DNA from: Mizuhopecten yessoensis
Taxonomy: Eukaryota
Direction: 5' to 3'
Length of the DNA: 64,000 nucleotides
Assembly: GCF_002113885.1 (NCBI RefSeq)
Contig: NW_018404289.1
Span: forward strand, 241,750-305,749
The translations under genes were made by a program, and so were the position numbers. The notes beneath the pieces were generated by a model. The model made no database searches. It saw only the letters and a program-made list of their open reading frames with translations, and had not been told where the DNA came from. Positions 5,421 to 60,511 of this stretch are shown here, one piece after another (position 1 is the first letter of the stretch; each line of letters begins with the position of its first letter).

Positions 5421-5482
5421 CCTGGACCAGGGTACTAAAATAAGGTACATAAAAAGATGGTCGATAAGCACTCCCTTCTCCC

Positions 5483-28069: not shown

Positions 28070-28590
28070 AGAGTAAGACATCGTTGTAGAAACAAAGCTG
28101 TAGGACGCTTCTGTTTACATCTGTGGAGAGTAAGACATCGTTGTAGAAACAAAGCTGTAGGACGCTTCTGTTTACATCTGTGGAGAGTAAGACATCGTTG
28201 TAGAAACAAAGCTGTAGGACGCTTCTGTTTACATCTGTGGAGAGTAAGACATCGTTGTAGAAACAAAGCTGTAGGACGCTTCTGTTTACATCTGTGGAGA
28301 GTAAGACATCGTTGTAGAAACAAAGCTGTAGGACGCTTCTGTTTACATCTGTGGAGAGTAAGACATCGTTGTAGAAACAAAGCTGTAGGACGCTTCTGTT
28401 TACATCTGTGGAGAGTAAGACATCGTTGTAGAAACAAAGCTGTAGGACGCTTCCGTTTAGATCTGTGAGGAGTAAGACATCGTTGTAGAAATAAAGCTGT
28501 AGGACGCTTCCGTTTAAATCTGTGGGGAGTAAGACATCATTGTAGAAACAAAGCTGTAGGACGCTTCCGTTGAGATATGTGGTGAGTAAA
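28070..28590. repeat. 57-bp minisatellite (~9 copies) immediately upstream of gene 1
   Basis: gagtaagacatcgttgtagaaac at 28071, 28128 and onward; it explains the 19-aa periodic ORFs. Confidence 0.95.
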
Positions 28591-28660: not shown

Positions 28661-31600
28661 ATGGCTGCAGAACGACTGATAGGAAGATACAGAGAGTGGA
28701 CGTTTTTATCACGAAATTGGAATAATAAAAGGTTATTCCAAGTTCATGGCATTCGATCAGTTGGGAAGTCGAGATTTGTGGAAGAATTTTTGAAATTCAA
28801 AGAGGATAGCAAAGAGTGTTATGTGAAGGTGGTGCCGATCAAGGTAAGGACGGTATCTGGTGTAAGAGGGATTTGTTTGTCCTTATTCTCTGCTCTAAAT
28901 CTGTCAGCACCGGAAGATGACACGATCTGGACAGAAACTATATGCAGCACTCTGGCCGGAAGAGGAGATACAGACATCATAATAGTGTTTGACGACGCTG
29001 AGAATATACTAGAGAGGGAAAGCGCAGAAGAGTTCAAACAGTTTTGTAAACATTTGATTGAAAACTGCAGGAATGTCAAAATCATCATCACATCGACAAC
29101 GGAAGTTGTTTTCGAAGACATCGAAGAGCAATGCATGGACCTTCTGATACCTCCTCTCTCGCCAACAGATTCTGAGGCGTTACTTCGTCGTTATGCCCCG
29201 TCCGTGGACTTTGGACCACATCTTAAGACCATAATTGAGTTGTGTGAGGGGTTACCTCTTGCCATCGCCATGGTTGCTTCGGAGCTGACAGGAACCGGAA
29301 GTGACGCTTCCTCTCTGACTGTAGCGGAAATGTCTCTGGCGCTTCAAAACTGTCGTCTTGAGGCCTTAAGTCAGTTCATGTATACACGTAACGAAAGATT
29401 AGGTGAGTATCAAGCTGGTATATCGTTATGATAACTTTCATGTTCTTTTGACTTTAACAACATGCTTATTTTGTCAACAAATCATGTTCAACTTTAATAT
29501 ACTGGTTATATTACGAACTGAAGAACTGGTTTGCTCTATCCATTTCAACTACTTTTTCATTTCTGACTGATTGGTGTCAAATGTTTTCCATTTTTTTCTG
29601 TTCCCGTTGTTGCCTATTTATGATAATACTTAAACCCAATTTTGTCCTTGCGTTGACGCTATTGTATGGTTTTCGGTTTTGCTATACCAAGGAATGGTTC
29701 AAATTCATATTCACATGTTCTTGACTGATACAAAGATGGTTTTCATCATTTTATTTTTTATGAAATGTCTTGATGTTAAGTTCTTATATATATTTTTGTT
29801 AAGAAAAAAATGTAATTTCAATTTAGTCAAAGAGTTTTACATCGTGAGCATATCAATTTATAGACCTTCTATTTTATCAGTATCAAATGTTCTCCCCACC
29901 AGATGCTATATACGGCACGTTCCTGGAACGTTTACCAGAGTCCATGCGACACAAACTGGCCATGATAGGGTACATACCCGGAACGTTTACTCCAAGTCAC
30001 GTGAGGGAGATGATCGGTAAGTATTTGATTAACATATATGACTATCGGAATTTCGTTACATTATCCGCTTTGCATGTCGGTTACTCTTGAAATCGTCGTG
30101 TCATGACCACAATCACAATTGCTCTCTCTTGATCGGGAGGTAGTATGTGACGTGGCAAGAATCACGGATACTGAAAATCCGGTCAAAATGCCACACCATA
30201 AATGTGTTGACTTGTCAGAATTAAAGAAATATAGCATATGGATAGTTAATTGACAATCCAGCCTGATTGATAATTTGAATAATCAGCTTTTATGTCCTTT
30301 GTGTAGATGATCCAACCGTCGAAGAGGCGATGGAAACTACCATTACGCCATTGATAAGACGACATTTTCTGAAACAGGACGACATCACACAGCGATACGA
30401 TATACAAGGGATCCTAAGGAACTGTATTGACGACTTATTGGAGACTGTTAAGAACAGCCCAGGTAGGAACATTACTCACATATTTCATATGAAGGTAAAT
30501 AGCAAATAAGAGGACTTCATAATCCCACTTTCAAACATTCAAATTGTGGCATGTCCTTGTCATATACAAAACAAATATGTTTGAATGTATATGAAACCTA
30601 CATTCTAAGTAGCATGCCCCTCGATCGCTTACTGCCAATATATTTCAAAATCCCGTTTTCTCATTTTTATTCTAGCGTTTCCCTCAATTTTTGCCGACTC
30701 TTTTATAAGACATATATTCTCTGGACATGATGGCAGTATTAAGGGGTTTTACTATATATATTTACGTACTTACTATCTATATTCCCCTATATTTCCAAAT
30801 GGAGTGTTGATGTTATTTTGTTAATGAAATATAAATTCCTACTCAACTTTACTTACTTGTAGAGGCGAAGGAGAGGTTCTGTTTCCTATTTGCCCGTTTA
30901 ATGACGAAAATCGGAAGTATGCTGACAACTTCCGAATACGCAGACGCCCTGTGTCAGTATAACCAAGAACAACAGAACTTCCAGAAGCTTCTAACGAATG
31001 TGGAGCTGGTCTACTCTAACGAAGATATGTATTGCCTGTATATGGAGATAGCGGTCAATGCGTCCAACGTCATCCAGCAGTTCATGGGCGGTAATGTTAC
31101 CTTAACATAATTAGTCAATTCCTACAATACAAAAATACATAAGAACGAAAAACGATTAACTGCTACACAATCGCATTCCATTCTTTTGTCAAACTGTCCA
31201 GTCAATGATTTTAGGAGAACAGTCATAATTTATTATATACAACATTTTTCTGTAATCAAGCCGTTTTTTTTGTATCTATATATAGTTACCATTATTGAGG
31301 TCGACTGGACGGACATGACCTCAGTTTAAATATCTATAATAGGGCAACTCCTATACACACAGCTTTAATATAGGCCTTTATTTGAGAAATATTGGATAAG
31401 ATTTTCATATTTCTTTATTGTTGCATTTCCTACAACTCTCGCACCATTCTGTTTATTTACTTGTTCTCCTAACAGCGTACACTAAAAGGAAATTATACGA
31501 GTAACTTAAGCTGTTGTCATGTTCCCTTCACAATACATGTAATACGACAGTTCTTGGTTCGTTAACCAGTTTTTTTTTATATGTTGCCCAGTTAATTACC

Positions 31601-34265
31601 TTATAAGTAGAAATGCTTTTATGGTCAGTTCAGTAGAGTATGAAAGGAAGAGGATTACAAATTTCACGATATATTGGTAGCGAACTATTAAAGTTTCCCC
31701 CTACGTTAACAGCTGACGGATTCCAGTTCTACCAAGAGCTTACCGTTCTCTCGTCAAAACTGAACAGAAAGCTGGACGAGGCATGTGTTCAGTTGTGTTA
31801 TGGTGGAGCGTTGACCAATGTCAAGGTCAGTGTGACGCCTTGTTCACAATGCATCTCAAACCTGAAAGTTGAATTATCAGCATGAGTTGTAGAAATCATT
31901 TTCCATTTTTTTTATTCATTTCTTTATTAAGGATGAAACAGAGTTTAATTCCTTATTCTTCTTCATCTTTAGATTTTTATTTTGTTTCTATCCCACAATC
32001 CCTATTGAATGTGAACTAGGCATTTCTGGTAGTGAATTACTAGTTCTAAAAACTTGGTACCGTACGTTTTATGTAGATAGCAGCTAAGCTTTCCATAAGG
32101 TACATACTAGTTAAATTGTTTTATTTTTGTTTTTATATAAACTCCGTATTCTGGATGCTCTATATGCTAATGTACATAATATCAAGACAAAATTTAAAGG
32201 GATGTCATATATTTAGGGCATCTCTAAAGAAGGCGAGGCGAAATATCGTCTTGCAATACAGTACTTGGAAAACTACAGGGATGACCCATCGCTGTCATTG
32301 TCCGGTTGCTACCACGGTCTGAGGAAGGACATCCGTTATCATCTGGCAACCTCGTATCAGAGAATGGGGTGGAATCTGTTTATCCAAGGCAGAACAAGTG
32401 AAGCTATCGTGTAAGTAGTGATTTCTTATTTCATACTAAAACTGCTGATCGTATAGCAATGTTTGTCCTGACTCACTGTGTTAATTGTGTAATTTTGGCG
32501 TTATTTTAGTTATCTGGAAAAGGCTTTTGAGTTTGAGAACGAGTTAAAGATGTACACGGACGAACTAATCCTATCTACGTTGATGTCACTTGGAATAACG
32601 CACAACCTCTCTGGTAAGTAATCATATGTACGTAAATCAACGTTCTTCATATTTATACTGTTCAAATTGTCATAAGTTATATTTTCTTCATTTTCATTCT
32701 TTCCAGAATTCATTTCGTTGCTTAGAATCCTTATTGCTTTAATTTATTTCCTAAGTGAAAGGATCTGATTCTTTCAGCACCATGACCTATAATAGATTAA
32801 AAACGTGTAAACTCCATACGAAATACCTCTATCTATAAATGCCTATGTATAAATATTGAGGAAATATCCGAACTTTACCAGAAAAATGACTTTCCAATAC
32901 TTGTATATAAAACTGCTGAGGATCTCTTACAGATAAAAAATTGTATTATATCGTCCAATATTGTACATTTTGTATTTCATTAAAATATTTGTTATACAAA
33001 TGTACCAGAAATGTGTCATAATAGCGCTCATACCACCAGAAATATTGACATCTTATTTTTATACAATCTTTCCCTATATTTTGCAATATATACTCAATGC
33101 ACTACTTTGTATTCTTATCTAGAGCACACAATCCTCAGTGAAACGATCTTGATATGTCGACTACTGGTTTACGGCACTTCACTTTTTTGTTTTTGTTTTG
33201 GTAAATACTGTCCGCTTTAGACATTTATTTGTAAAGATTTTTTATTTGGATATTAATTGCCAAAAACTGTTTTTTTCGATTGATATTAATTGCCAAAAAC
33301 TATTTTTTTGGATGGATATTGATTTCTATTGGCTATTTTTCATCGTGGAACTATTAAAATTAGTGTTGTCTTTTATTATTGAAAAAAAGGACAAATGAAA
33401 ATGCACTTTTTTTACATCCCCAGAGAACATGAGCGTCGCTCTTCGGTATCACGAAGAAGCTCTTCGCCGGAGGAAACAACTTTACAAAACTCCAGAAGAT
33501 CCTGAGGGGGAAAGACATCCTGCTATTGGATCCTGCTACAACAACATGGGACTGACATACCGTAAGATGGAACGCAAGGACGAAACGCTCTACTATTTCA
33601 AAAAGTCATTGGAAGTAAAACAGAAAACCAAAGCCCCACAAAAATCTGTCGCGATATCGATTATCAATGTTGCCAGTGCTCTTTCCGAAACAGGAAAGCA
33701 TAACGAAGGTATGCTTATGTTACGAGATGCAACGGCAATTTTAAACAAGACCCCAAATATTTATCAAGACACAAAAGCTTTAGTATATGCAACGGAAGGC
33801 CAGATCATGCTCCGCAAGAAATGCTACAAAGAAAGCATTAAGCTCTTCAAGAAATCCTTATCCATTCGCAAGCACAGCGGCCCTAACAACTTTTGGTCAG
33901 GAGAGACATACAACGACCTCGCTAAGGCATACATTGGTCTCAATGATAGCAGACAGGCTCTTTATTGGCTGAATAAAGTGTTCAGTCTGCAAGAGGAATT
34001 AAAATCAGATGCTCCAACTAATTCGTTCGTGTACGACTGCTACGTTAGAGTCATGGGCGTGCTTGCTGACATTGGCAATTACGACGAGGTTGGTTACGCG
34101 TTTAATATTGCATTGCAAGAGCTGCAGCGCTTACGCGTGGAGTTCACTGCCTTGGGCAACGCTACCAAGATAGCGTGGGTAGATTCTGAAAGCAGTTCGC
34201 TTCCTGGAGTCTTTACCCGTCTGGTTCCCTGCACCGATCAGTCACAGCCACTGTGTGTCCAGTAG
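28661..34265 (+). CDS. Gene 1: STAND (NB-ARC-like) NTPase - winged helix - TPR protein, 830 aa; join(28661..29402,29903..30016,30307..30462,30863..31090,31713..31825,32217..32410,32510..32613,33424..34265)
   Basis: All seven introns are GT..AG and splicing gives one open frame of 2493 nt. Motifs: LIGR pre-P-loop, Walker A GIRSVGKS, Walker B IIVFDDAE, IIITSTT (sensor-1 position), PLSPTDSEALL, CEGLPLAI (GxP), RYDIQGILR (MHD position), KLC/TPR_12-like HPAIGSCYNNMGLTY. Candidate AATAAA at 34811. An acceptor at 28655 implies an unseen upstream exon. Confidence 0.88.
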
Positions 34266-35227
34266 ATACAGGTTACACAACACCATTGGTGAACTGTGTT
34301 AATTGAAGACCGTATAACAAATATGGGTGAGGCTGAATATCATACCAGATTTTTTTATGAACCGACGCACGCTCCAAAACCTCGAAATTTCATTCAGTTT
34401 AAAAATTAACTAAATCGAGTCAGATATACATGATATCCAACCTGCATGCAAGTCGCGTGTAGCATAGAAGTTAGCTCTCACACGCGAGATTATTTCTTTT
34501 GGACATACATTTACTGATAATATGGTTTCATTTTTTTGTACCCGTATGATGTGTTTATATATTCTCCCTTTAAATAATTTGTGAAACTACCATCATACGG
34601 ACGTGGATATAATCCAAACATAGCTTATTTTGACTTGTTGATTGAAATATTAATCTGTTTTTAAAATACTGTCTCGCTGTTTCTCAACTTTCTATAACGT
34701 ATGACGTCGTGTCGTTTTCATCAAGAAGACAATAAGCAGGACCTTGACACAATGAATAATTCATGTTTTGCGCATTTTCTCCGCTCTTGAGCTCTAAATT
34801 ACATATTTGCAATAAATTTCTTTTGTCGAAAACATTAACTTTATTTGGCTTTCTCTATCGACGAACTCAGTATTTAAATAGGTATTTCCTTAGTTCGCAT
34901 CTCTAGAATGTTTCCCATCGAGTGATGGTTGGTTATCATGTTTATCTAATTCGAGTAAGTTAATTTTCATGTTGTGTAAAGACACGATTTTAAAGTGTCT
35001 TTTAACAATCTACAAACTAACTAAGGAGAGTTAGATAAACATGATAATCAACCATCACTTGTTTAGATACATTTTCTTCCACAACGCCAAGATATTAAAT
35101 CTAAAAAATCTAATTTTTCTCTTGGAATACATTATTCCCGTTCGGGGAAACAATTGCCATGAGTTTTTACATGACAAAGCATTGTTACTTGATGTCGTTA
35201 TTTGAGGATTGACCAATGAAATAACGT

Positions 35228-37765
35228 CCAATGTGTTTCCCGCTAGTGGGTTACCAAACATGATTACCAACTCCCACCAGGTTTATCCAATGAGTTTCCC
35301 GCTAGAGGGTTACCAAACATGATTACCAACTCCTAGCAGGTTTATACAATGAGTTTCCCGCTAGTGGGTTACCAAACATGATTACCAACTCCTAGCAGGT
35401 TTATCCAATGAGTGACCCGTTAGTAATTAACCAAACATGTTTACCACTTCTTATAGGTTTATCCAATGCGTTTCCCGCTAGTGGGTTAGCAAACATGTTG
35501 ACAAACTCCTAGTAGTTTTATCCAATGAGTTTCCCGCTAGTGGGTTACCAAACATGGTGACCAACTCCTAGCAGGTTTAGAGTTTCCCGCTAGTGGGTTA
35601 TCAAAAATGTTGACAAACTCCTAGCAGGTTTATCCAATAAGTTTTCCGCTAGTGGGTTACCAAACATAGTTACCAACTCCTAGCAGGTTTATCCAATGAG
35701 TAACCCGCTAGTTGGTTACCAAACATGGTTACCAACTCCTAGCAGGTTTATCCAATGAGTGACCCGTTAGTAATTAACAAAACATGTTTACCACTCCTTA
35801 TAGGTTTATCCAATGAGTTTCCCGCTAGTGGGATACCAAACATGGTGACCAACTCCTAGCAGGTTTAGAGTTTCCCGCTAGTGGGTTATCAAAAATGTTG
35901 ACAAACTCCTAGCAGGTTTATCCAATGAGTTTCCCTCTAGTGGGTTACCAAACATGGTGACCAACTCCTAGCAGGTTTAGAGTTTCCCACTAGTGGGTTA
36001 GCAAACATGATAACCAACTCCTAGCAGGTTTATCCAATGAGTGACCCGTTAGTAATTAACCAAACATGTTTACCACTCCTTATAGGTTTATCCAATGAGT
36101 TTCCCGCTAGTGGGTTAGCAAACATGTTGACAAACTCCTAGCAGGTGTATCCAATGAGTTTTCCGCTAGTGGGTTACCAAACATGGTTACCAACTCGTAG
36201 CAGGTTTATCCAATGAGTAACCCGCTGGTGGGTTACCAAATATGATTACCAACTCCTAGCAGGTTTATCCAATACGTTTCTCGCTAGTGGGTTACCAAAC
36301 ATGATAACCAACTCCTAGAAGGTTTATCCAATGAGTTTCCCGCTAGTGGGTTACCAAACATGATTACCAACTCCTAGCAGGTTTATCCAATGAGTGACCC
36401 GTTAGTAATTAACCAAACATATTTACCCCTCCTTATAGGTTTATCCAATGAGTTTCCCGCTAGTGGGTTACAAAACATGGTGACCAACTCCTAGCAGGTT
36501 TATCCAATGAGTGACCCGTTAGTAATTTATAGGTTTATCCAATGCGTTTCCCGCTAGTGGGTTAGCAAACATGTTGACAAACTCCTAGCAGGTGTATCCA
36601 ATGAGTTTTCCGCTAGTGGGTTACCAAACATGGTTACCAACTCGTAGCAGGTTTATCCAATGAGTAACCCGCTGGTGGGTTACCAAATATGATTACCAAC
36701 TCCTAGCAGGTTTATCCAATGAGTGACCCGTTAGTAATTTATAGGTTTATCCAATGCGTTTCCCGCTAGTGGGTTACCAAACATGATTTCCAACTCCTAG
36801 CAGGTTTATCCAATGAGTGACCCGTTAGTAATTTATAGGTTTATCCAATGCGTTTCCCGCTAGTGGGTTACCAAACATGATTTCCAACTCCTAGCAGGTT
36901 TATCCAATGAGTGACCCGTTAGTAATTAACCAAACATATTTACCCCTCCTTATAGGTTTATCCAATGAGTTTCCCGCTAGTGGGTTATCAATCCAATGAG
37001 TTTCCCGCTAGTGGGTTACCAAACATGATTACCAACTCCTAGCAGGTTTATCCAATGAGTGACCCGTTAGTAATTAACCAAACATATTTACCACTCCTTA
37101 TAGGTTTATCCAATGAGTTTCCCGCTAGTGGGTTATCAAACATGTTGACAAACTCCTAGCAGGTTTATCCAATGAGTTTCCCGCTAAAGGGTTAACAAAC
37201 ATGTTGACAAACTCCTAGCAGGCTTATCCAATGAGTTTTCCGCAAGTGGGTTACCAAACATGGTTACGAACTCCTAGCAGGTTTATCCAAAGAGTTACCC
37301 GCTATTTGGTTACCAAATATGGTTACCAACTCCTAGCAGGTTTATCCAATGAGTTTTCCGCTAGTGGGTTACCAAACATGGTTACCAACTCCTAGCAGGT
37401 TTATCCAATGAGTTACCCGCTAGTGGGTTACAAAACATGTTTACCAACTCCTAGCAGGTTTATCCAATGCGTCTCTCGCTAGTGAGTAACCAGACATGTT
37501 TACCAACTCCTAGCAGGTTTATCCAATGCGTTTCTCGCTAGTGAGTAAACAGATATGTTTACCAACTCCTAGCAGGTTTATTTAATGCGTTTCTCGCTAG
37601 TGAGTAACCAGACATGTTTACCAACTGCTAGCAGGTTTATCCAATGCGTTTCTCGCTAGTGAGTAAACAGATATGTTTACCAACTCCTAGCAGGTTTATC
37701 CAATGCGTTTCTCGCTAGTGAGTAACCAGATATGTTGACCAACTCCTAGCAGGTTTATTCAATAA
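35228..37765. repeat. 59-bp satellite (CCAATGAGTTTCCCGCTAGTGGGTTACCAAACATG..., ~43 copies) with interspersed subvariants
   Basis: Units at 35281 and 35340; a variant unit gtgacccgttagtaattaac recurs. Confidence 0.95.
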
Positions 37766-37939
37766 GTTGGCAGCGAGGAAATCTATGGTGGCTTTGGGAG
37801 AAAGTAATTTGACCACCGTAATATGTTACAACACCTACAAAATCGACCAACTGATATGACGTGTATAATAACTAAACAAATAGGAATTGAAATGATTATA
37901 CTGTATCTTTTGTGTCGGAAATTCCATGGAATCTTTCGC

Positions 37940-38570
37940 TATGGATTACCGAGTTAGCTTCCCTTGTAATAACCACATCCATTGTGTGACCATGGGTGTG
38001 TTTAGTTTCTGTCACATGGTGAATTAGACCCCTGGAATCTAGTAGCCCAGAGAACTGACTAGTATTAACATAAGATATATCTTCTAAGTGGAAATATAGG
38101 TCACATGTGATAATAATCCCTTGTGGTACAACAACTTGGTGGTTTAAAAAGATAGAGCACTAAAAAAAACCCACAGTATTTCGGAAACCGTTCTGTTTAG
38201 ATTGAACAGACCTGTAAATGATACACAATTTGAATTGTTTATCACCAGCAATGACAGAACAAGTCACGTGCTCAAAATGTGTGCCTAAATCATCATGGCT
38301 GGAATAGAGATGTCTAACACTTAGGCCTTTCTTAAACAGACAAGCGACCACACCACCACGACTGTTGAGTCTAGCATTGTGAAGGAATTCTTATCCTCCT
38401 ATTGTTATTAGCTCAACTAGTACCTGGTCATCGATATGGGAATCCAACCAAGTTTCTGTTAATGCCAGAATATCAATGTCCTGAGATGTTACAACATTTC
38501 CGATGGACAGTGACTTGTTCTTCAACGAGCGACAGTCCAATGACACTAGATTCACAGGAATAGCTGACTT
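37940..38570 (-). mobile_element. Degenerate non-LTR retrotransposon (CR1/L2-like) ORF2 apurinic-endonuclease fragment
   Basis: Minus-strand translation gives LDCRSLKNK, DILALTETWL, RGGVVACL, CIIYRS, IIITCDLYFH (GDFN motif) and HGHTMDVVITR (GHTLD motif), with internal stops. Confidence 0.85.
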
Positions 38571-41390
38571 ACAATAACCGGTTGTTGTTTGATGACATGT
38601 TAACTCTCGTACGAGACCGTGTCGGAATCCGTGTGGAACTATCGTAACGAGAGTTCCGATAGTTTTGGTGGCTGTTACGTCTGTTGGTGCATTGTATCTA
38701 TGGCGGCCAGACCATTTGTGGTGACCAGCTGGACCAGATAATCGGTTTCCAGGACAGAACATTTAAATATCTTTGTTTTCCTTTTGAATAAGTGAACATT
38801 ATCAAATGTGTTATTGTATAAATTAAAAAGTCTCCGTTTCTTTGTAGGAAAGCAGTTATGATTAAATATTTTTTGAGCAGTGTTTGTTTCCGAACCAGGA
38901 AATTATCATACGGTTGTCAAAGTGATATTATTACCGACTATATGAAGTTATCAATAACTTGTTAACTCTGTCTTAAAGTGTAGATGACTCACATGTTACC
39001 TTGATTCGAGCGGGAAGTCATATTGACATGTGTCACAAAGGTAATGATAGAGGTGTAATTTGAAGATACTAGAGCAATATGAAAATTATAATGAAAAAAA
39101 AGTACCAAAAAAATAGATAAATAAAATAAAAAAATGAACAAAAACAAATGAATTCTAAGGTTAAAGGTATCGTGCCGCTAACCTGCGCTCGTTTTGCGTA
39201 TCAGCGGGATAAAACTGACATTTAAAAAAAATGTTCTTACATAGCAAAACTTATTTACTTTCCGTTAATACAACACTCAGGATGTGAAACGTGTCAAAGA
39301 TATAAAAGAAAAAGGATATAAATATTATTTTCTTTCGTGTCGAATTCAGTAATTTACATAGTGTTGAGCATGACCTTTTGGGGTTCTTTAGGTGTTGTTA
39401 GAAAAGTTCGCCAAATAGGAAAGAAGAAAAGTTTTGAGAGAACATTATGTAGCTACATGTATTGTCATGACGATAGTTATATACATGTGTTCTTTTACAG
39501 ACATACAAATGTATGTATTTAGGCAGATTCCATTATAAATATATGTTTAAAAATTAGATTTCATCTTAAAGACATATTTTTGTGTGTTTCATGGTAATAC
39601 GCTAATTCTTTATAGTTAGCTTGCGAGTAGCATTTCCTTTTAACAGTATCTTTCCATCCACTCCATACTGTCATACAAGTAAGGAAAGTCAAGGTGATTT
39701 GTAGAATAAGTGTTAAGAAATGTCCTTCCTCATGATTTATATGTGAAACATTAATGTTCTCTCTTTCAATCAATAAGAAAGCGTGAAAAATCAATAGAAA
39801 ACCTTTCTGTCCATATCACCGAACAAAGGTTTATAGAACATATGAACAGTATTGCTTTAATAATTTAGAGGGAAGGACGTTAAGCCGAGAAAAACATGAC
39901 TTATATTTCTGATAAAAATCAATTCCTTCATCGAAAACTATTTTGAGGACAGAGAGAACATAAATGTTAAAAGATGGTATACCTGGGTTTTGAATTAATT
40001 TACATATCTTGTAAAATACATTCTGTAGTTTTATACATTACATGCATCCCTGACAATGAGAAATACCATTTCAAAGCAATTTTTTTTCCGGATCGTAAAA
40101 CATGTATGCATTATATGCGTGTTCATAAAGCACACCAAACTATCATATGTTCTTTCGGTAATATCCGAGGAGTGTGAAAAATAATCAAAGTGCGTGGCTA
40201 TCTTAACCACTTTCCAAACTAAGCAAACAAAACTTATCAACCCTCAGTCTGAATGTCTGTTAGCTGAGTGAGATATAGGTGCCTTGTATTTAAAAAAACC
40301 ACACAATATCATTATTCAGTACTGGAATCTAAAAGCATTTTGAGGACTGATATGAAACGAACCATTCATATTTATTGATACAATTGAGATAGTTAACTGT
40401 GATGTAATTCGAGGCAGGGGGTTCGCCATCCCCAACATTACAAGGGTTACGCTCTAAATGTTCTCATCAACCCTGGAACAGGACAAAATAAAACGCTCTG
40501 CACGCGTCCCCTTGTGGATGTTACAGGTATACCGGTTTAATCCTTTGCTGTAAATCGATATAATCGATCGGCAGCATAGCGGTCATCTGTAACTTTCAGA
40601 GGAAAGACATCAGCCTAGCAATTGGTCAGGTGTTTCATTTGAAACCAATCAAGTAGTTATCCACGAACTATCAGTTTCGTCATGACTTTTTTTCAGGGAT
40701 GAAGAGAAACGTCAATGATCCTAATCCCTGGAGAATCGTGGATGGGATTTTACTCACGTTGTTGTTTGCGTGCGTAGATTTCCTGGACAACCCAATACTG
40801 TTGATTATTTATTATGAGTCGTAAAAAATGTTTATACTCATAGAGTTCACAGGCTTGATGTACATGATATGTACATAAACAATAAACGTTAAATACAAAA
40901 ATAATATGTCTCAATATAAATAATTATCTAAAACAGCATTTTGTTTACTGTTATTATATTTTCAGAATATCATATTAACATTGGCAGATTATGAATTTTA
41001 TATCCAAGATCTGATCGCTAACCTTCATATGTATTATTGTGTTGATTTTGGTGGCTTGACATGATAATCCTCAGTTCTTTTACTTCTAAAAGAATGAATA
41101 ATGATGTAAAACGAAATGTGCTATACTTAATAATCTGAACTCTATTACTGTTTTCGTTTTTCGATTAACACTACTCCGATCTTCTGAAAACATACTCTTG
41201 TTCTTTCTAGATAAACCGACCATTCTCACTCTGTTTTAAACAAATATAACAGTCCCGATGTATAGTCCCGGAGTAATGATCTAGGAAGAGCAAGGCACGG
41301 TGATATAAGGGTAGGATACAATAAAATCAGCAGCATTCTGGAGAGTGACGAAAAAGGAATGGGGGTCAAGTTATGGTCTCTGATCTTTAG

Positions 41391-41583
41391 TCAAGGTTTC
41401 TGCAAAAAATATGAGTTTTGTTTAAATTATTGAAGATCGTTTTGAAACCCGTAGATTTTTCGGGGGAACATGAAGGGACTTTCTACGTCATAGAACATCT
41501 GAACCTCTAAAGCTTCTCACAGACGTCATATATACCATTGAGGATACATACGGGGCCTTTTTGGAACTATAGCCCTCAGAGGG
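41391..41583 (+). pseudogene. Decayed copy of exon 4 of the STAND-TPR family (relic of a fourth paralog)
   Basis: 41513-41554 encodes LLTDVIYTIEDTYG and is 39/42 nt identical to gene 3 exon 4 (LLTDVMYTTEDTYG). Flanks align with the RFCK, VDSSEYLEG and ELALR segments. It carries a TAA and indels and is preceded by ctttag. Confidence 0.8.
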
Positions 41584-42094
41584 AAATATGGGTATACTTG
41601 CCTGTGCGTTCTATCTTGATATATAGTTGTAACACGTGGTCGTGGTAGCTGTTGATCCAGTGTCCTTTGATCCTTTGTGACTGACATAATTCCTTGATTT
41701 GACAGGGGTACCTCATGTTTTACCTGCTTCCTGTTTCGTAACTATATATTTCCACAAAACAAGGACAATTTTCCTTACAATTGATCCCTCTTACAACAGA
41801 ACATATATAATCTATTTACAAGGGCCCTAAAACAGCTATCTTTAATAGCCTTAAACATGGATCTGATACTTCAGTCGTTTTAGTGTTCACTTGTATGGTT
41901 ATACATATCCGCTTTAAAGTGTCAGTTACGTGGCTTATCACAACCCAAATCTACACCACTACTACATTGTGTAACAACTGTTTTCTACTGAACAGATGTA
42001 CACCCGGCGTTATTTACGAGGAGAGTAAACAGTGTCTGGATAACACCGCCATACCACTAAAGGTATTACATGATACCACACCAAGGTACAAACA

Positions 42095-48000: not shown

Positions 48001-50435
48001 TGCAGAACTTGAACAAATGAACAGTCCACGGTTATAGGTGGCTGATCAACATGTCAACATTGATTGATGAGGTTCAGAATTGTTTCAACTTACAGTCGAT
48101 ATGTTTATACAATCTTTATTACTTGAATCAAACTAGCAAAACAAAAAGTATAAACTTCATTTATTTCACAACAATTATGAAACAAGTTATTTCAACTTAT
48201 ATTATTCACTCTTGTTGACCCGGATGTTAGCGCGTGGGGGTCTTAGTATGGGAGGAAACCGGAGTACCCGGAGAAACCCCACGTGGTCGGGCAGACCGCC
48301 TTGGTGAAAGGCAAGTGCGCTATCCACTGCACAACCCGACCACCCTGAAAAACAAAACAATTTAAAAGTTGATCAGAGATTTTGTTTTTAGGGAACAACA
48401 TCGCTAGCCGAAAAAAACTATTTCATCGCTTTAGACGTTTTGAATGAAGTCTCCCAGAGCAGCCCATCAGGACAAACAGGTGATAAAGTCGTACGTAGGT
48501 CATTGGCGTTGGTCTATCAGAGGATCGGATGGAACGTAGGCAGTCAGGGACGATGGCAGGAAGCCCTGGTGTAAGTTTTATCTAATTAAAGGTTTAAAGT
48601 TCAAAAAAATAATTAAAGTACCAAAATTTCACAGTGTCAAAATAGAAAGACATAACAGTGAACTATAAAAAAAAGAATATTGTATTGGAGTCATTTTTCC
48701 CCGAATATGACAACGTTTTATTGCATTAAATTTGATATTTTCCTGCTCGAAGATTTACTTTTATTACTTGTTTGTATATATGGGGTCGGCTAACCCTTTC
48801 TTTATATTGTGTGAAGGTACCTGGACAAAGCTTTCCACCTGGAGCAGGAATTACATATGTATTACGAGGAACTTGCCATATCAACTATTCAATCTTTATC
48901 TGTATTTAACACCTTTCTGGGTGAGTAAAGTAGCAATATAAATATAACAAAATCGGAACAGTACCCAAATCGAATTGATCACTTTTTTCAAAAATACTTT
49001 TAAATCAGCAGGTGTCAGCAGTTCAAATAGTACAATGATATACAGACAAGCATCAATTTTGGCTACAGATGATTACATTTTAGTTCTTACATCAGAAGAC
49101 TATTTCAAACGCAAAAATGAAGTTTTGTAAGAGGGCTTTGTATGCTGTTGGGACTGTAGGAATAAATTCAGCCTATAGAAATACTTGAATTCACATAAAT
49201 GCCAAAGTTCATCATAAAATGTTGAAATGCTGAAAAAAAGTTCATTTAAAGCGTAAGATATTGCAGAATTCAAGTCATGATCCGATTTTGATACTGTCAT
49301 TTGCAAACACCGAAAAAATGCTAATTGGTGAGTCAAAGTGTTCTATAAAAGTATCCAATACCCGTCGATATTTTTCTTATGATGCAACCGTAAATGAATA
49401 TAATAAATCATTTTAATTTTTAATGAATGAATAAAAACGATGGTTTGGTGATACGGTTTGGGTACTGTCACTTTAGATAATGATGTATATTTGTTATTTC
49501 GATTAAATGTTGAAGGAATTAAATCCTGTCTTTATTAATGTTCGGTATCGAAACATTTAACGCTGTAACATGAAAAAAATACATCCATTTTTATTCTCAT
49601 CTTATTATGCATAGGCTATTTTTAAAACATCTTTACAGGTAATCTGGAACTTGGATTGAAATTTAACAAGGAAGCATTTAGAAGAAGAACTGCCTTTTAT
49701 GGGACGGAGGAACATCCAAATGTGGCGACACTTGTCAACAACCTAGGGCTCATCTATCGTAGACTAGGTCAGAAGGACACGTGTCTGGAGTGCTTTATGA
49801 ACGGATTACGTCTGAAGCGTAAAACAAAGGCTACAGCTAAGTCTATTGCAATATCCTTGGAGAACGTAGCACTGGCTTTTACTGACAAAGGCGACCACGA
49901 CCAGGCACTCAATTATTTAAAAGAAGCATATGATTTGCTAGATAAGACTCCAAATCTTTACAGGGACAATAGGGCATATGCGTATTCCATTGAAAGTGAG
50001 GTTTTACAAAAACAAGCCCGACACGCTGAAGCCATATCAAGACTTAAAAAAGCAGTGAACATCATTGTTCGTGAGGCCCCTGATGAAATCTTTACAAGCA
50101 AACTGTATTTTGAAATAGCGAATTCCTATTTCGCACTGGAGAACTACCCAAAAGCTATAGCTTTTTGTAACAATGTGTTCAATTCAAAACATGTACTTCT
50201 AAGGGAGGCTCCGACATGTGACCGTCTGTTCCAGTCTTGCAAGACCGCCATACATTGTCATACCAAACTAGGAGACGACATAAACAGACGGAAATGGTAC
50301 GATGAAGCAACAAGGGAGGCAACTCGCCTCATACAAATCTTCAGGAGTTACGGAAAAGACGAAAAAGTTTCAATAATTACGAACGAACTTCGGTCACTTC
50401 AGAAGCGATTTGAAAGTGACGTAGAAAGTAACTAA
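42095..50435 (+). CDS. Gene 2: STAND (NB-ARC-like) NTPase - winged helix - TPR protein, ~801 aa; join(42095..42818,44272..44385,45294..45446,46274..>46465[gap],47667..47779,48392..48570,48817..48920,49639..50435)
   Basis: Same exon phases as gene 1, with equal lengths for exons 2, 5 and 7 (114, 113, 104 nt). Motifs: FVGRE, GLRSIGKS, VIIFDNAE, VIVTSTT, CGGFPLAV, RYDVHGLLR, HPNVATLVNNLGLIY. Exon 4 is cut by N + poly-G at 46466; the length assumes a 222-nt exon 4 as in gene 3. In-frame TGA at 42071 upstream of the ATG. AATAAA at 50531. Confidence 0.82.
46466..46486. other. Assembly gap (single N) followed by 20 G
   Basis: Literal n at 46466 followed by a G run; it truncates gene 2 exon 4. Confidence 0.9.
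48205..48345 (-). mobile_element. tRNA-derived SINE with V-domain-type core, in intron 5 of gene 2
   Basis: Reverse complement has a tRNA-like head (GTGCAGTGGATAGCGCAC) and GGTTTCTCCGGGTACTCCGGTTTCCTCCCA, matching the V-SINE core. Confidence 0.75.
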
Positions 50436-51995: not shown

Positions 51996-52089
51996 TGTAG
52001 CCGTCCAATGAGTTACCTGTAGCTGTCCAATAAATGGATTCTTTTGTGTACTTATTGGACAGCTACAGGTAACTTATTGGACTGCTACA
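51996..52089. other. Inverted repeat / hairpin, 38-bp arms (36/38 paired), 18-nt loop
   Basis: 51996-52033 pairs with 52052-52089; the arms are built from a ~22-bp subunit. Confidence 0.85.
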
Positions 52090-53808: not shown

Positions 53809-53986
53809 TAATAAACAAACATGTGTTACCAAATAAACAAACATGTGTTAGCAAATAAACAAACATGTGTTACCAAATAAACAAACATGTGTTACCAAAT
53901 AAACAAACATGTGTTAGCAAATAAACAAACATGTGTTACCAAATAAACAAACATGTGTTAGCAAAATAAACAAACATGTGTTAACA
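53809..53986. repeat. 22-bp minisatellite AAATAAACAAACATGTGTTACC (~8 copies)
   Basis: Direct reading. Confidence 0.9.
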
Positions 53987-54832
53987 AAATTTATATTTCC
54001 CATAAGAATCTCTATATGCCGATAAAAATGGCAAATAATTATGATAATTGTTCGAAAACTTCGGTATTTGGTAGAGAAATATACAAAGAGTTTGCGGAAA
54101 AGACATTGCGAATCGCTCCAAATAATGAATGCGAGACTAAGTGAGACAAACATAGGCCAAAACATTTAAATCTAGCTACCTCCTCATTGTTGCTTGAATA
54201 AAATCTATTATTTATGTTTTGCCCATAAAATTGTAAAATAACACGCGAATTCGTTTAAAAGATTTAACTTTTTCCTAAATACTTCCGCAACAAGATGAAG
54301 AGTGTGATTTTTAACCAATATAAGTGTATAAGGAAGTGTTCAATGTATTGTTAGCTTTACTCAGAACTCTGGGTCTGGTTCTCGTCACTCGTTGTTATAT
54401 GTTTCGTATTGTTTAATGCAACGTTAATGCAAATATGTTATCAAACTAACAAAGCTAAGACAAACTGAACTCAAACAGATAGGGTTTAGATTTTTAACGC
54501 TTCAATAGTCTTGGTTTACATTGACAATACTTCATACGGATTGGTCGAATCATGTGTTCATAAATTTATCGTACCCTTGACATGTGAAAAAAATAAGTCA
54601 ACTACAGCATAGAATTTCACAAAAAGCTATTACGAGGACAATTGAGCAAGAGTCTTACGTCATTAATGTACGTATACAATTTAAATGTTATTGGCAGCAT
54701 GCTTTGCACTGTCCTATGGTGACTGTGTGACGCTCAGTACACACCAGAAGGCTACCTTTAGAATATAGCAGTGTAAATGTGCCGGCAGAACAGAACTATA
54801 CAAATATTAGAAGTCACCCTGTGTCTGAAGTC

Positions 54833-57800
54833 ATGGGATTTGTTGGTAGAAAAGATGAATTGATGGAACTAAAAAGTGAGTTTGACTCAAAAGACATATT
54901 TGCTATATATGGATTGCGTTCTGTTGGAAAATCTCGACTTGTGGAAACTTTTATAAATCAGCTTTCATGGAGAAGTATTTGGATCGACATGGGAAACATG
55001 AAGAGCATGAGACCAGTGTATATGACCTTACTTCAGAGACTACTACCAGATAGCGTCTCAGCACAACGCGGTATTTCTAGAACACCTACTGTCGCTGTCG
55101 AGGACTGGTGGACCGGTATTCAGAGTATTATCAATGAGGGTGTGTCAGAGCCCACTGTCATTGTTCTAGATAATGCTGAAGACGTGGTGGAGACAGAAAG
55201 AATTGCGATGGAATTCCTTCAAATGTGCGTTCTTCTTACATCTACCTCGAGAAGTATTAAGGTGTTCGTAACATCTACAACGGAAATGTCGTTTGATGAA
55301 AACAGCATGATTTCCTTATTTTCATTTCATCTGAAAGCTTTGGATCAGGAAAGCTCGGCACAACTTCTTTCAGCTAATGCACCAACCGTTAACTTCGGAT
55401 CCAATATGGCGACCATCGTAGAATTATGTGAAGGTCTTCCTCTTGCGCTGTTGATGACGTCATCGATTCTTGAGGACAAAGAATCATTGTTTGCTGCTGG
55501 CGATATGGTCCGTCTCCTTCGTTTATGTCGTATGGAAGTTCTGAGTCAAGCTTTGTATCAAAGAAAAGAAAGAATAGGTATAATAACATATATACATTCT
55601 ACTGTCTTATGAATCATTGGTGTGCTTTAAATTAAAATAGTGTATTTATAAAAAGGAGCTACATAACGTATGAAAAGTTTTTATTAGTAACGAGATATTA
55701 CATTAAATAACACGGCCTTTTCGAGCCAAAGAATAACATGTAAATCATACCAAATCTACATAATCTTGTCTAAAATCTTTAATTATTTGTGAAAACTTCA
55801 ATACAATAAATTAATTATCGTTGAATATGTAAAAGCAAGTGTCTGATATCAACGTAAAAAATTATCAGGATTTATTCTCAAAAATAATTCGTTTTTTGAC
55901 AGGCAATGTCTATGGGGAGTTTTTACGACGACTTTCAGTGTCTCTGAGAAACGATCTCGCTACCTTGGTGTATATACCCGGATCGTTTACAGACTCTCAG
56001 GCGAGCGCAATGATCGGTGAGTCTATTTTGGAAATATCTGTGTACAACAAAACGTTAATGTTGAACAGCAATATGGGATCATAAGGGAGTCTTATATAAC
56101 TAAATATTTTGGTATTTAATACAAGAGGCAATCATGATGCAAAAATTAAAAAAAATCTGCGCATCAACCTATAAAAGCAGAAAACAAAGTACATGTTTTT
56201 GTGAAGTCGTAATAAGGGAAACAACTCTTACATTCCTGAGTAGAAATGGTGTGTTTAGGATGTTCAAGGTCGTGCATTTTCGTCGTTTGGTACTTAAAAT
56301 GTCTGACATGGACTTAATCTCTATTTGGCTATGGTGATTTTATTAATATACCCATACCTCGGCGAAGCAACAAAACCCGTAAAATAATAACAGTCTATGT
56401 AAGATGTAATACAGCTCTTATCTTCAAAGACATCAGCAGACGAGCGTTACATGTCCTTTGTCGTCACTTTAGCGGCCGTATTTCTTGACGATTTTTTTTT
56501 ATACTTCGGATAAGATTGACTAAGGACATCATCGATTAAACGTCAAAACCACTGTAACTAAAATAGAAATTCATCAACACAACCATAGGACGCTGGCAAT
56601 TCTACCCTGTTTTTTTTTTTTTTTGAAGGTCAAAGAAAAAACTTCATGTGGTAAAGATGGTAACAGTTGACAGGGATTTATATTTTTAACATATATTGGC
56701 TTTTACAGGAAACACGTCTAACAAAGAAACCCACATAACCACAATACAACCGATAATGCGGCGGAACATCATCCACCACATCCGGGGTACGGATCGGTAT
56801 GACGTCCACGGGATACTGCGAGACTGCGTGGCTTTGTATCTGGACGTGAAGAATCTCCCAGGTAAGCCATGCTTTTTGTTTTTTGCAGAGAGCAAAAACG
56901 TTTAAAGGAAACCTTAAGGTAGAAATAAAACAGTACTTATACTTGGACTTGGTCAGTAATTGCTTACTTTGTTTGGCTTCATGCATCGACTTTTATCGAA
57001 ACCGAAATTTCTAAAAGGCATCTGTGCTCCCCTACTTTATATTTCTAACAATACTTTTAAATCATACAGTTTAAAAAACTGACAGGGAACTTAAACTATT
57101 AATAAACAACAGATACACCTTTACAATACTGACTTTCAATTATTGTTAATTGATGTTTTTTCATTTGAAGAAACAAGGAAACGGTTTTGTAAGATTTTCG
57201 CACGGCTTATTATCGCTATCAGTGAGAAGGTAGATTCTTCCGAGTACCTGGAGGGACTGTGTCTGTACAACTTAGAACGTCAGAACTTCCAGAAACTTCT
57301 CACTGACGTCATGTATACCACTGAGGATACATACGGGCTCTACATGGAACTGGCCCTCAGGGCGACACACGTCATACAGAGCTTCATGATAGGTAATGTT
57401 ATATATATGTCACGGATGGTCCTAGTTCGTGATATCTACCATCGAGTGGGTAATTATTTTATCATAATGATATGTTATAAAGATTTTCTGTCTTTGTTAC
57501 TTTCGCAATAAATATTGGTTTTCAGTTACGTTTTCGTAAAATTAACGTAAATTTGGTATCCCACATAGCATCCATATGTTTGCAATGTGAGTTTTAATGC
57601 TACTCCTGAGATATACTGGTCGTAATACCTATCGAATATATAATTTAGCATCTCAGTCAGTCGAATTTACAAATTAGTTATGAAGGCATCAGCGGGAAAT
57701 AATGAGCGTAAATTGGTATCAAGGCATATGCCTCCATTAGATAATTCAATATCCATTTTATTCATAACGGCCTTTTTAAACAAAACATTTCTCGAAAGGA

Positions 57801-60511
57801 ACGATTGTGATTTATGTGTGGTCCGGTGTCAATTTTTAAATTCCGCCATGTTTCAGTTATATTTTCCTGTTCATATCATGGAATGCTGCTGCGCATATTT
57901 CTGAGAATTATTTGATGGTCGTTATATTTTCAGAATATGATTTCAAATTCTACACCGAGCTGATGCGAATGTGTCGTAACAACAAGAACTATGTGGATGA
58001 AGTTTGTATCCAGATACAGTACGGCAGTGCACTCACCAACGTCCAGGTAAGCTTGCTATCCGATGTGTATGTCACCAATGTAGGGTGCATTTTTCTTAGT
58101 GATAATCATTCCAGCTAAATCAATAAATATATTAAAAATATATATAATGGATCAGTTGATTTCTTTTGTTTTTAGACCAAACGTATTTGCTATGCAATGA
58201 ACTGTAAACAGGAAACTGTTCACGCGTCACAAAGATAACTCCTGTGACTTTAACAATACAATATCACGTCTAATTTTTCTAAACATTTTCTTCCGGTTGG
58301 TAAGTATGTATGGAAAATAGGCATACGCTTCATTGGTCATTTGTCTGATGAAGGTGACAGTGGACATATCGTACTAGTCATCGAAACGTCACATATTTTT
58401 TTTTTATTGGTTGTGTAAAATGAACTTCTCATAATCACGTCCGATTGTCTATACAGGGAGATAACTCCTGTGACTTTAACAATACAATATCACGTCTGAT
58501 TGTCTATACAGGGAGATTTAATGACTGGTGAGACGAACTATATGAAAGCTTTGACATTTCTTGAACACAACTCGACCAACGATTCCACACGGGACCTTCG
58601 ACCAATAATGGCCTTGGCCTATCAGAGAATCGGATGGAACATCGGTTGTCAAGGCCGGTGTCAAGAGGCGTTAAGGTCAGCTAAGTTAGCAATGATTTGT
58701 CGCGAACTAAAAGAGTGCGAGTTTAAAGGAGCTGTCAGACTAAAAGTAACAATGTGGCTACATTTATCAGATTATCATCATGTACATAATTATGGAACAA
58801 GTTTTGAAATGAATCGTATTTAGATAAAGGCTATGCACAGTTTCTCCATCAACAAATTATATTTCTGAACAGAAACTTGCGTTAAGAACTATTGAACTAC
58901 CATAAATGTTTTCTGAAGATAACAAGCTCGTGGTTCAAATGGTCTCTTTTCTGTTTCAGATATCTCTATAAAGCCTTGAAGCTAGAACAAGATCTAAACA
59001 TGTATTATGAAGAACTTGCCATGTCAACAATACAAAGTTTGTCCTGTTTCCATGTCACTTCCGGTAAATACCGCACTGTGTCCTCTATCATCAATACTGT
59101 CGGTCAATCTACGATTTGTAACCGTAGACATTCTAAACTTCTAACGATTAACAAAATATGGCGTTTTGGTATGGAACTTCGTACATATTTTAATGATAAC
59201 ACTGCTGATAGATTCCCTAAAAAATCAGGTGATAGCATACTTACCAGGTTTGAATTTAATCCAGTAAAAAGAGGTCCTTGGGAAGTTGTTTTTATCTATA
59301 AATGAAATGAAAAATATTGTTCAAATATATTTAGTCTTTTTAATCATTCATTTATCTGTATGTTGTTGCTGAGCGTTCTAACTCGCCCTTTCCTTTTTTC
59401 AATTGATATTACACCCTTTTTTCAATTGTTGTTACAAAAGTATTACTTTCAAAGATAGAAGATAATGGTACCCCATAAAGGATTGATCAAGTATGTAAAA
59501 ACTGTACAATAACTAACATGGGAACTATTTCTATTTTCGAAAAAACTTAAAATGTAAATGTTCATTAGCCTCCCATACATAAGATCTAACAGATATAACA
59601 GCTGACTGATATTACTTCATCAGTGGAAACTTGCCTATCTGTTGAACTTAATTTGGTATTTCTTCTGTTTAACAACAGGTAACGTTAAGGAAGGTATCAA
59701 ATTACATCAGGAAGCTTTAAAGAGAAGAATCGAGTGCTACAAAACTGACCAACATCCATATGTTGCTTCCTGCATCAACAATTTAGGAATTGCCTACAGA
59801 AAGTTGGGGCAAGAGGAAGAGGCTTTACACTGCTTCCAGCGAGCGCTTGTCGAAAAAAAGGACACCAAAGGAACGGGGAAATCTATCGCAATATCAATGA
59901 AGAATGTAGCTTGGTCACTAACTGAGTGTGGTAACCACGTCGAGGCTTGGGACAAGATCGAGGAAGCATTCAGCATCCTAAACAAAACCCCAAACCTATA
60001 TTTAGAAATTCGGTGTTACTGTCATGCTGTGGAGGGCAGAATACTACGAAATACTGGACAGGATGAAGAAGCAATTCAGATATATAAGATGTCTCTAACA
60101 ATTGCTAAAAGTCATGCTCCTGTGTTTTTGTTTGAATGCATGATTCATTTGGAAATAGGAGAGCTTCAGTTTAAAAGAAAACGATATGATATCGTTCTCA
60201 AAAGGCTGGAACATGTATTTAAAGTTGGTCCTTCGCTGATTTCCGAAGATCCCTCCTCTGACATTTTGATCGACTCTTATGTCGTGGCCATAGATTGTCA
60301 CGTAGCGTTACGTGATATGTATATGGCTACGCTCCGTGGTACATATGCTGTCAGAGAAATTGAAAGGTTACTGCAAGTTTGCAATGATTTTGAACTTGAA
60401 GACAAGATTACGACACTTAAAAAACGTGAATATGAACTGAAAGAAAAAATAAGGAATATGAAAATGATAGAATTTAAAGATCAATCTAAAACGAGCAATT
60501 TACCAAATTGA
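54833..60511 (+). CDS. Gene 3: STAND (NB-ARC-like) NTPase - winged helix - TPR protein, 815 aa; join(54833..55577,55903..56016,56709..56861,57171..57392,57934..58046,58512..58675,58960..59063,59679..60511)
   Basis: GT-AG introns with the same phases give 2448 nt of open frame. Motifs: FVGRK, GLRSVGKS, VIVLDNAE, VFVTSTT, CEGLPLAL, RYDVHGILR, HPYVASCINNLGIAY. The frame stays open upstream to a candidate acceptor at 54761, so the start could lie in an upstream exon. Confidence 0.87.

Follow-up and report, generated by a model that had tools for sequence, protein, structure and literature searches.

We analysed a 64,000-nucleotide stretch of the genome of the scallop Mizuhopecten yessoensis (scaffold NEDP02000962.1, approximately positions 241750-305749; the window) and found that its plus strand carries three paralogous genes, here called A (28661-34265), B (42095-50435) and C (54833-60511), whose exons code for a signal transduction ATPase with numerous domains (STAND) followed by tetratricopeptide repeats (TPRs). 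The genes were located by tblastn of exon open reading frames (ORFs) against the window, and the exon borders were set by direct reading of the DNA after ORF listing and tblastn (Table 1). Eight coding segments are repeated in A, B and C, and neither the ORF listing nor tblastn of the exon ORFs gave a fourth copy of the eight-segment gene in the window. The introns were observed to be GT-AG throughout (21 counted), the donor of B exon 4 itself being absent from the assembly. The intron phases 1,1,1,1,0,2,1 are common to the three genes, and exon 2 (114 nt), exon 5 (113 nt) and exon 7 (104 nt) have the same length in each of them. A first-pass annotation of this DNA, made from its letters alone, had described three same-strand paralogs of eight coding exons with shared phases and equal exons 2, 5 and 7, and this description is borne out by the borders read from the DNA and by the RefSeq match of A and C. 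Both ends of the span that it gave for the cluster are exact, with 28661 falling at the ATG of A and 60511 at the stop codon of C.

The gene A model (2493 nt, 830 residues) reproduces RefSeq LOC110442765 exon by exon with 0 mismatches and with split codons that fit, and the same is true of the gene C model (2448 nt, 815 residues) and RefSeq XP_021342269.1/LOC110442801. For B we could assign eight exon-homologous segments from which a complete reading frame cannot be written, so that the claim of eight coding exons in each gene stands for A and C and is weaker for B. The acceptor of gene C exon 4 is AAG (tttcatttgaag; window 57155-57170), which is a weak site, yet the RefSeq model uses the same one. 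The genes are not unannotated, since A and C are already present in RefSeq as 'uncharacterized protein', and NB-ARC-TPR proteins had already been surveyed in invertebrates.

Table 1. Coordinates of the exons of genes A, B and C, of the exon-4 relic and of the satellite arrays, as positions in the window
Feature	Position	Strand	Content	Evidence or remark
Gene A exon 1	28661-29402	+	Start ATG, NBD (P-loop, Walker B), HD1 with GLPL	Pfam NB-ARC 35.8 bits; equals RefSeq residues 1-247
Gene A exon 2 (114 nt)	29903-30016	+	Winged-helix domain, first half	
Gene A exon 3	30307-30462	+	Winged helix, second half; MHD-like motif IQG	
Gene A exon 4	30863-31090	+	First arm hairpins	
Gene A exon 5 (113 nt)	31713-31825	+	End of arm	
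Gene A exon 6	32217-32410	+	First TPR-like hairpins	
Gene A exon 7 (104 nt)	32510-32613	+		Missed by tblastn; recovered via frame reading
Gene A exon 8	33424-34265	+	TPR sensor, stop codon	TPR_12 E 4.5e-23
Gene B exon 1	42095-42818	+	NBD, HD1	NB-ARC 28.4 bits; 75% identity to Pecten maximus ortholog
Gene B exon 2 (114 nt)	44272-44385	+		
Gene B exon 3	45294-45446	+	Winged helix with VHG	
Gene B exon 4, present part	46274-46465	+		Cut by N at 46466 and poly-G; 3' ~30 nt and donor absent
Gene B exon 5 (113 nt)	47667-47779	+		
Gene B exon 6	48392-48570	+		
Gene B exon 7 (104 nt)	48817-48920	+		
Gene B exon 8	49639-50435	+	TPR sensor, stop codon	TPR_12 E 9.6e-21
Gene C exon 1	54833-55577	+	Start ATG, NBD, HD1	NB-ARC 39.7 bits; equals RefSeq residues 1-248
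Gene C exon 2 (114 nt)	55903-56016	+		
Gene C exon 3	56709-56861	+	Winged helix with VHG	
Gene C exon 4	57171-57392	+	Arm	Unusual AAG acceptor; DNA 96% identical to B exon 4
Gene C exon 5 (113 nt)	57934-58046	+		
Gene C exon 6	58512-58675	+		
Gene C exon 7 (104 nt)	58960-59063	+		
Gene C exon 8	59679-60511	+	TPR sensor, stop codon	TPR_12 E 1.2e-17
Solitary exon-4 relic	41451-41579	+	In-frame stop; ~0.5 kb upstream of B	74-75% DNA identity to B/C exon 4 (blastn); tblastn and frame reading
Satellite array	5482-6613		45 bp x25	
Satellite array	13374-16920		31 bp x114	
Satellite array	20853-22278		33 bp x43	
Satellite array	35227-37768		59 bp x43	
Satellite array	60996-63363		55 bp x43	

Domain searches were run on the individual exons of A, B and C, and full-length work was carried out on the database proteins of A and C. 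Exon 1 of each gene was found to match Pfam NB-ARC (PF00931) above the gathering cut-off of 23.5 bits, and the full-length C and A proteins scored 36.1 and 32.4 bits respectively. Exon 8 of all three genes matches TPR_12 (E 1e-17 to 5e-23) and also TPR_10. The short middle exons, searched singly against Pfam, gave no matches because the pieces are too short, and the winged helix and the arm were assigned solely from the family alignment and from an AlphaFold2 (AF2) model. This model was built for the C protein from an alignment of 30 family sequences and has a predicted local distance difference test score (pLDDT) of 90.3 and a predicted template modelling score (pTM) of 0.82. It consists of a five-stranded nucleotide-binding domain (NBD; residues 1-170), a helical domain (HD1) that carries the GLPL motif (172-236), a winged helix including its beta hairpin (248-330), an arm made of helices (336-449) and about eight TPR-like hairpins (450-810). 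The exons follow these domains, with the NBD and HD1 in exon 1, the winged helix in exons 2-3, the arm in exons 4-5 and the sensor in exons 6-8. No effector domain was found at either terminus, where the proteins start 2-6 residues ahead of the FVGR of the nucleotide-binding oligomerisation domain (NOD) and end at the last TPR helix. The Pfam, AF2 and Foldseek checks thus agree on the STAND (NB-ARC)-winged helix-TPR architecture that had been proposed in the first-pass annotation, and its C-terminal TPR solenoid is seen both in the TPR_12 matches of exon 8 and in a model that is all-helical in this region.

The P-loop, the Walker B aspartate, the GLPL motif and the winged-helix histidine were found to be conserved over 30 family members. 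Walker A reads G[IL]RS[VI]GKS in A, B and C, and its residues G27, G32 and K33 are invariant in the 30 members. At Walker B the aspartate is conserved and the next residue is aspartate in A and asparagine in B, C and most family members (FDNAED), with a near-invariant glutamate three residues later. The GLPL motif of HD1 occurs as CEGLPLA or CGGFPLA, where P203 is invariant and G201 nearly so. The MHD-type histidine is present in exon 3 of B and C (RYDVHG(I/L)LRDC) and is a glutamine (IQG) in A and its orthologs; in the AF2 model the winged-helix beta hairpin and helix lie at residues 308-330. The sensor-1 arginine is replaced by threonine (hhhTSTT(E)/ITSTTE), and this assignment is based on alignment and not on structure, the arginine of NRC1 'LLTTRD' being aligned with the threonine. 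The full STAND motif series that had been reported earlier is thus not quite complete: the proteins have Walker A, the Walker B aspartate, GLPL and, with glutamine in its place in A, the MHD-like histidine, yet they lack the sensor-1 arginine, and B and C have asparagine at the second Walker B position.

A phmmer search of the PDB with residues 1-340 of the C protein gave no match, and a profile of 23 family members was needed. This NOD profile matches the plant NRCs (E 2e-12), Apaf-1 (E 3e-9) and the archaeal STAND-TPR protein PH0952 (E 5e-9), and its alignment with Apaf-1 (residues 125-450) begins in the NBD and includes the whole winged helix. In the Foldseek search of the PDB with the AF2 model, PH0952 was the top match (E 7e-13 over 746 columns), and Apaf-1 (about 2e-7) and Avs3 (PDB 8dgc; 2.7e-7) were also found. 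The NOD superposes on CED-4 at 4.3 Å over 359 columns, on Roq1 at 4.0 Å over 354, on NRC3 at 4.5-4.9 Å over about 370 and on NRC4 at 4-5 Å over about 360. No match of exon 1 of A, B or C to NACHT was observed at E<=1, and no NACHT protein was among the profile matches in the PDB at E<0.1. From these matches, the family belongs to the STAND NTPases of the NB-ARC (AP-ATPase) clade and not to the NACHT clade. As a separate observation, the fit of the NOD is 4-5 Å to CED-4 and the oligomeric plant resistosomes and about 24 Å to closed ADP-bound Apaf-1, where the alignment lengths differ and the state of the model is not implied.

When 1.84 billion representative proteins were searched with a profile, 1761 matches were obtained at E<=1e-3, 48 of them at E<=1e-30. 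Named members of about 800 residues cover all of the main groups of bivalves (Ylistrum, Pecten, Argopecten, Mytilus, Pinctada, Ostrea, Saccostrea, Mya, Mercenaria, Sinanodonta, Potamilus and Solemya) and were also observed in gastropods (Haliotis, Gigantopelta), a cephalopod and a nemertean; the hemichordate Glandiceps and the crinoid Antedon have more distant members of that length. The named members are all 'uncharacterized' or mis-named via their TPRs, and the database names 'nephrocystin-3-like' and 'OGT SEC' are TPR-driven mis-assignments of this kind. Logan contigs of 2.7-4.4 kb from other species hold family members as single ORFs of 820 and 1205 residues, and these look like assembled spliced transcripts. 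The copy number is about four per scallop genome, the fourth scallop paralog (D) being on a separate scaffold, and 1-4 in the other molluscs sampled. The cluster is thus not lineage-specific, as the first-pass annotation had held it to be, since its members have 1:1 orthologs in Ylistrum and Pecten and the family reaches well beyond the bivalves; nor is the family expanded.

The order of the genes is retained among scallops. Ylistrum balloti has an A ortholog, a degenerate B-like copy and a C ortholog, in this order, and Pecten maximus has an A ortholog with a complete B ortholog after it. A tree built on the exon-1 region groups each of the three genes with its own scallop orthologs (support 99-100) and places B as the sister of C (97). 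The conserved order, the 1:1 pairing and the low copy number show a small family and an old cluster that did not arise in a recent burst. Values of dN/dS (the ratio of nonsynonymous to synonymous substitution rates; Nei-Gojobori, exon by exon) against the orthologs are 0.10-0.11 for A, 0.16 for C and 0.19 for B, with dS of about 1. As exon-level averages, the TPR exon 8 (0.10-0.21) was observed to evolve no faster than the NTPase exon 1 (0.13-0.19). Protein identity among the scallop genera is 66-79%, and the paralogs are about 35% identical in the TPR exon. In the P. maximus A ortholog, the alignment of exon 8 (locus 4086-4911) breaks into two pieces that overlap and lie in different frames, and only 653 residues are annotated for the product; a frameshift or an assembly error could be the cause.

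The hemichordate gene carries its NOD in one exon. One intron in its TPR region matches the scallop introns in position and phase and another is 1 nt off. This argues for vertical descent within bilaterians. A recent horizontal transfer from bacteria was also considered and was rejected because the genes are intron-rich, are spread widely among animals and have an intron in common with the hemichordate.

Exon 4 of gene B runs into a single N at 46466 and then into about 20 G (46466-46487), and the sequence that follows is unrelated to the exon. Its missing 3' end (about 30 nt) and donor were not found downstream of the poly-G at the DNA or protein level. The N and the poly-G look like an assembly or read artefact and not like biology. 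The other seven exons of B are open and their GT-AG splice sites are intact. The protein collections contained no stand-alone B protein. In the part of the scaffold that corresponds to window 44833-50435, GenBank annotates a gene whose product of 1675 residues ends at the B stop codon, an end point that suggests a fusion of A and B in a single gene model. In Y. balloti the copy between the A and C orthologs (locus 18426-22788) matches B only as fragments with shifting frames, and B may therefore be a pseudogene in Ylistrum, though it is intact in P. maximus, where the complete ortholog has 804 residues. Apart from the solitary exon-4 relic upstream of B, matched here at 41510-41569, no further family copies or relic exons were found in the spacers or upstream of A.

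We noticed that exon 4 is far more alike in B and C than the rest of the two genes. Compared over 46272-46465 in B and 57169-57362 in C, the two exons are 96% identical in DNA and 94% in protein, whereas the remaining exons of B and C have 35-68% protein identity. This likeness begins at the acceptor AG and does not include the intron. Exon 4 of the Pecten B ortholog is 84-88% identical to both B and C exon 4. Possible causes are gene conversion, an arm domain under strong constraint, or an effect of the assembly.

Taken together, A, B and C are best explained as tandem paralogs of long standing, in a conserved animal family of low copy number whose NB-ARC STAND-TPR proteins would act as ligand-triggered switches, perhaps in surveillance or cell-death signalling, and we give this explanation as a whole an even chance of being right. 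The gene structures, the domain order, the fold, the clade, the conservation of the cluster in scallops and the purifying selection are established by the present analysis. By analogy with Apaf-1, plant NLRs, MalT and PH0952, the NOD of the resting protein would be closed on its nucleotide, with the arm and the TPR region as clamps; a double clamp of this kind, by arm and sensor, has been put forward as the autoinhibition model for TPR-type STANDs (PMC6468293). Binding of a ligand to the TPR superhelix would free the clamp, nucleotide exchange would follow and the opened NOD would oligomerise. Because the proteins have no effector domain, the output would have to be supplied by a partner with a gene of its own that joins the oligomer, or else by oligomers in which the paralogs are mixed. 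A fast-evolving pathogen protein is less likely as the ligand than a conserved molecule, be it endogenous or foreign and invariant. As a weaker part of this proposal, the most likely role by analogy would be intracellular surveillance or regulated cell-death signalling, since DED, Death, HEPN or CHAT effectors are found in more distant proteins with the same NTPase. As examples, DED-NTPase-TPR(-Death) proteins occur in amphioxus, HEPN_DZIP3 occurs in Lingula and one other protein, DUF4559/HEPN_Swt1 occurs in an octocoral and others, and SAM together with CHAT occurs in one protein.

Several observations weigh against the proposal of a surveillance switch. The immune or cell-death role draws solely on domain associations in the distant relatives, and no partner or effector gene was identified in the window. 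The sensor-1 threonine, together with asparagine at the second Walker B position in B and C, suggests that nucleotide hydrolysis may be slow or absent and that the switch may be unlike the textbook cycle. Gene B cannot be read end to end in this assembly. Furthermore, a family of few copies, with 1:1 orthologs and with purifying selection that is uniform along the gene, is what one expects of a non-immune regulator. A role of that kind is a serious rival, in which the proteins would be a conserved regulatory scaffold, that is, nucleotide-gated TPR adaptors for housekeeping or development, comparable to NPHP3 in cilia or LGN/Pins in spindle orientation. The 1:1 orthologs over scallops and the same-length relatives in a hemichordate and a crinoid fit such adaptors, as do dN/dS values of 0.10-0.19 with a TPR exon that is not faster than the NTPase exon, the absence of an effector domain, and a TPR part that in the Foldseek search resembles LGN/Pins, OGT and APPBP2. 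Against them, the proteins are not NPHP3 orthologs, with NPHP3 models staying below their cut-offs; among the named matches, vertebrates and ecdysozoans appear to be absent, as would seldom be the case if the gene served core housekeeping; death-fold, HEPN and CHAT effectors, typical of conflict systems, are borne by the nearest of the more distant relatives; and an identity of 66-79% among scallop genera does not indicate strong constraint. We consider the scaffold possible, and clearly less probable than a surveillance switch. The view taken in the first-pass annotation, of a lineage-specific pattern-recognition cluster, here read as one that expands and has TPRs diversifying after pathogen ligands, is in our opinion very improbable. 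It has in its favour the tandem paralogs, a STAND-TPR layout as in fungal NLR-like proteins and Avs, and an identity among the paralogs of just about 35% in the TPR exon. However, the duplications are older than the split of the scallop genera and every paralog has its own ortholog, the TPR exon has dN/dS of 0.10-0.21, near-identical internal repeats of the fungal NLR type are absent from every exon 8, no Avs model matches and a genome holds about four family members. Expansion or rapid turnover and diversifying selection on the sensor, both hallmarks of immune receptors, were seen neither in the copy counts nor in the exon-level dN/dS, so that the arms-race signature expected of such a receptor is missing at the level of the gene. 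The oligomerisation of the NTPase that had been proposed likewise has no visible output, as the proteins lack an effector domain.

Two further readings concern the relation of the three genes to one another. A, B and C could form a mixed sensor/helper oligomer, an animal counterpart of the plant NRC networks or of NAIP-NLRC4, that signals via a separate partner. The arm exon 4 would then be near-identical in B and C, by gene conversion or constraint, because both proteins dock alike; we give such an oligomer little credence. Gene B could also be a dying copy in a cluster that is decaying to two working genes. The 3' end and donor of exon 4 that are absent in this assembly, the lack of a stand-alone B protein in the collections, the fragmented B-like copy of Ylistrum and the lone exon-4 relic upstream of B would all be consistent with decay. 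Nevertheless, the seven remaining exons are open with intact GT-AG sites, B has dN/dS of 0.19 against its Pecten ortholog, the break coincides with an N and poly-G that look like an assembly fault, and P. maximus has a complete ortholog of 804 residues. The decay of B is therefore unlikely in our view, though less so than the mixed oligomer.

Satellite arrays (Table 1) were found to occupy much of the space around and between A, B and C. A 57-bp unit is present nine times at 28070-28589 with 97% identity, and this array stops 72 bp short of the ATG of gene A, in what is presumed to be its promoter or 5' untranslated region. The core AATAAACAAACAT is common to a 22-bp repeat upstream of C (53810-53988) and the 55-bp satellite downstream of it. 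The 33-bp array gives long spurious ORFs on both strands. Two adjacent minus-strand ORFs (38160-38762) were suspected to code for the N-terminus of a retrotransposon endonuclease; they gave no Pfam match and we make no claim for them. No RNA families were found in the window with Rfam.

To our knowledge, the only animal STANDs that have been studied functionally are Apaf-1 and the NACHT-type NLRs, and we know of no functional study of any of the surveyed invertebrate NB-ARC-TPR proteins. Genome surveys (Zmasek 2007, PMC2246300; Kamm 2019, PMC6321704; discussed in PMC3879445) have described NB-ARC proteins in which TPRs replace WD40 repeats, some with a death-fold or TIR domain, in sea urchin, amphioxus, Nematostella, Hydra and placozoans. 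Our literature search gave no paper that defines the family of about 800 residues without effector or that names these loci, and a search for 'nephrocystin-3' in bivalve immune papers gave nothing useful. The earlier statement that NB-ARC-TPR proteins are poorly characterised in animals is in line with this, as no characterisation of the family was found in that search. What is new here is a well-delimited effector-less subfamily of about 800 residues, within an architecture class that is already known. A small and conserved family without effectors that persists in numerous marine invertebrates, with 1:1 orthologs and a confident model, offers a workable entry to the questions of what animal NB-ARC-TPR proteins sense and how they signal. 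In addition, the annotation gains from the correction of the misleading names 'nephrocystin-3-like' and 'OGT SEC' and from the flagging of the merged A and B model and of the assembly fault in gene B.

Among known systems, NPHP3 is like the scallop family in having a P-loop NTPase followed by TPR_12-type repeats, and weak matches to NPHP3 models were observed. NPHP3_N scored 19.9 bits in C only (cut-off 24.8) and TPR_NPHP3 scored 13-31 bits (cut-off 100), and orthology to NPHP3 was rejected since both models stay below their Pfam cut-offs. The NTPase of NPHP3 is of the NACHT type and is preceded by an N-terminal TeTIR domain (bioRxiv 10.64898/2026.09.21.753143). The canonical animal NLRs (NACHT-LRR) are also different, as the scallop proteins have no NACHT and no C-terminal leucine-rich repeats (LRRs); their C-terminus consists of TPR_12/TPR_10 repeats and is all-helical in the model. 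Apaf-1 and CED-4 share with the scallop family an NB-ARC-clade NOD (NBD, HD1 with GLPL and a winged helix with the conserved histidine) that is followed by an arm and a repeat sensor. However, the N-terminal CARD and the C-terminal WD40 propellers of Apaf-1 are absent in the scallop proteins, which have no death-fold domain, use TPRs and not WD40 repeats as the sensor and carry threonine where Apaf-1 has R265. The scallop genes are not Apaf-1 orthologs.

The bacterial Avs proteins (Avs3) and the fungal NB-ARC-TPR NLR-like proteins likewise consist of a STAND NTPase and then a TPR-type sensor. They differ in their N-terminal effectors, among them nucleases, proteases, HET or HeLo, whereas no N-terminal domain of the fungal type (HET, HeLo, PNP_UDP or others) is present in the scallop proteins. 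The Avs models of PADLOC gave no match, and just weak P-loop-level matches to PDC-S27, PDC-S01 and a TPR model were observed. The fungal TPR arrays are near-identical, hypervariable repeats, and Tandem Repeats Finder detected no tandem arrays inside any exon 8. Plant NB-ARC NLRs (the NRC helpers, Roq1 and Sr35) differ in having an LRR sensor and coiled-coil or TIR executioners, in forming large, fast-evolving families and in keeping the sensor-1 arginine; by profile they are nevertheless the nearest solved relatives (E 2e-12 to 1e-10), with GLPL and MHD-type motifs in common. The prokaryotic transcription factors PH0952 and MalT have a DNA-binding effector domain, which the scallop proteins lack, and sequence identity is about 15%. 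Their order of NOD, arm and TPR is that of the scallop family, PH0952 is the best match to the whole protein by fold, and this layout is thought to be ancestral for STAND proteins (PMC6468293).

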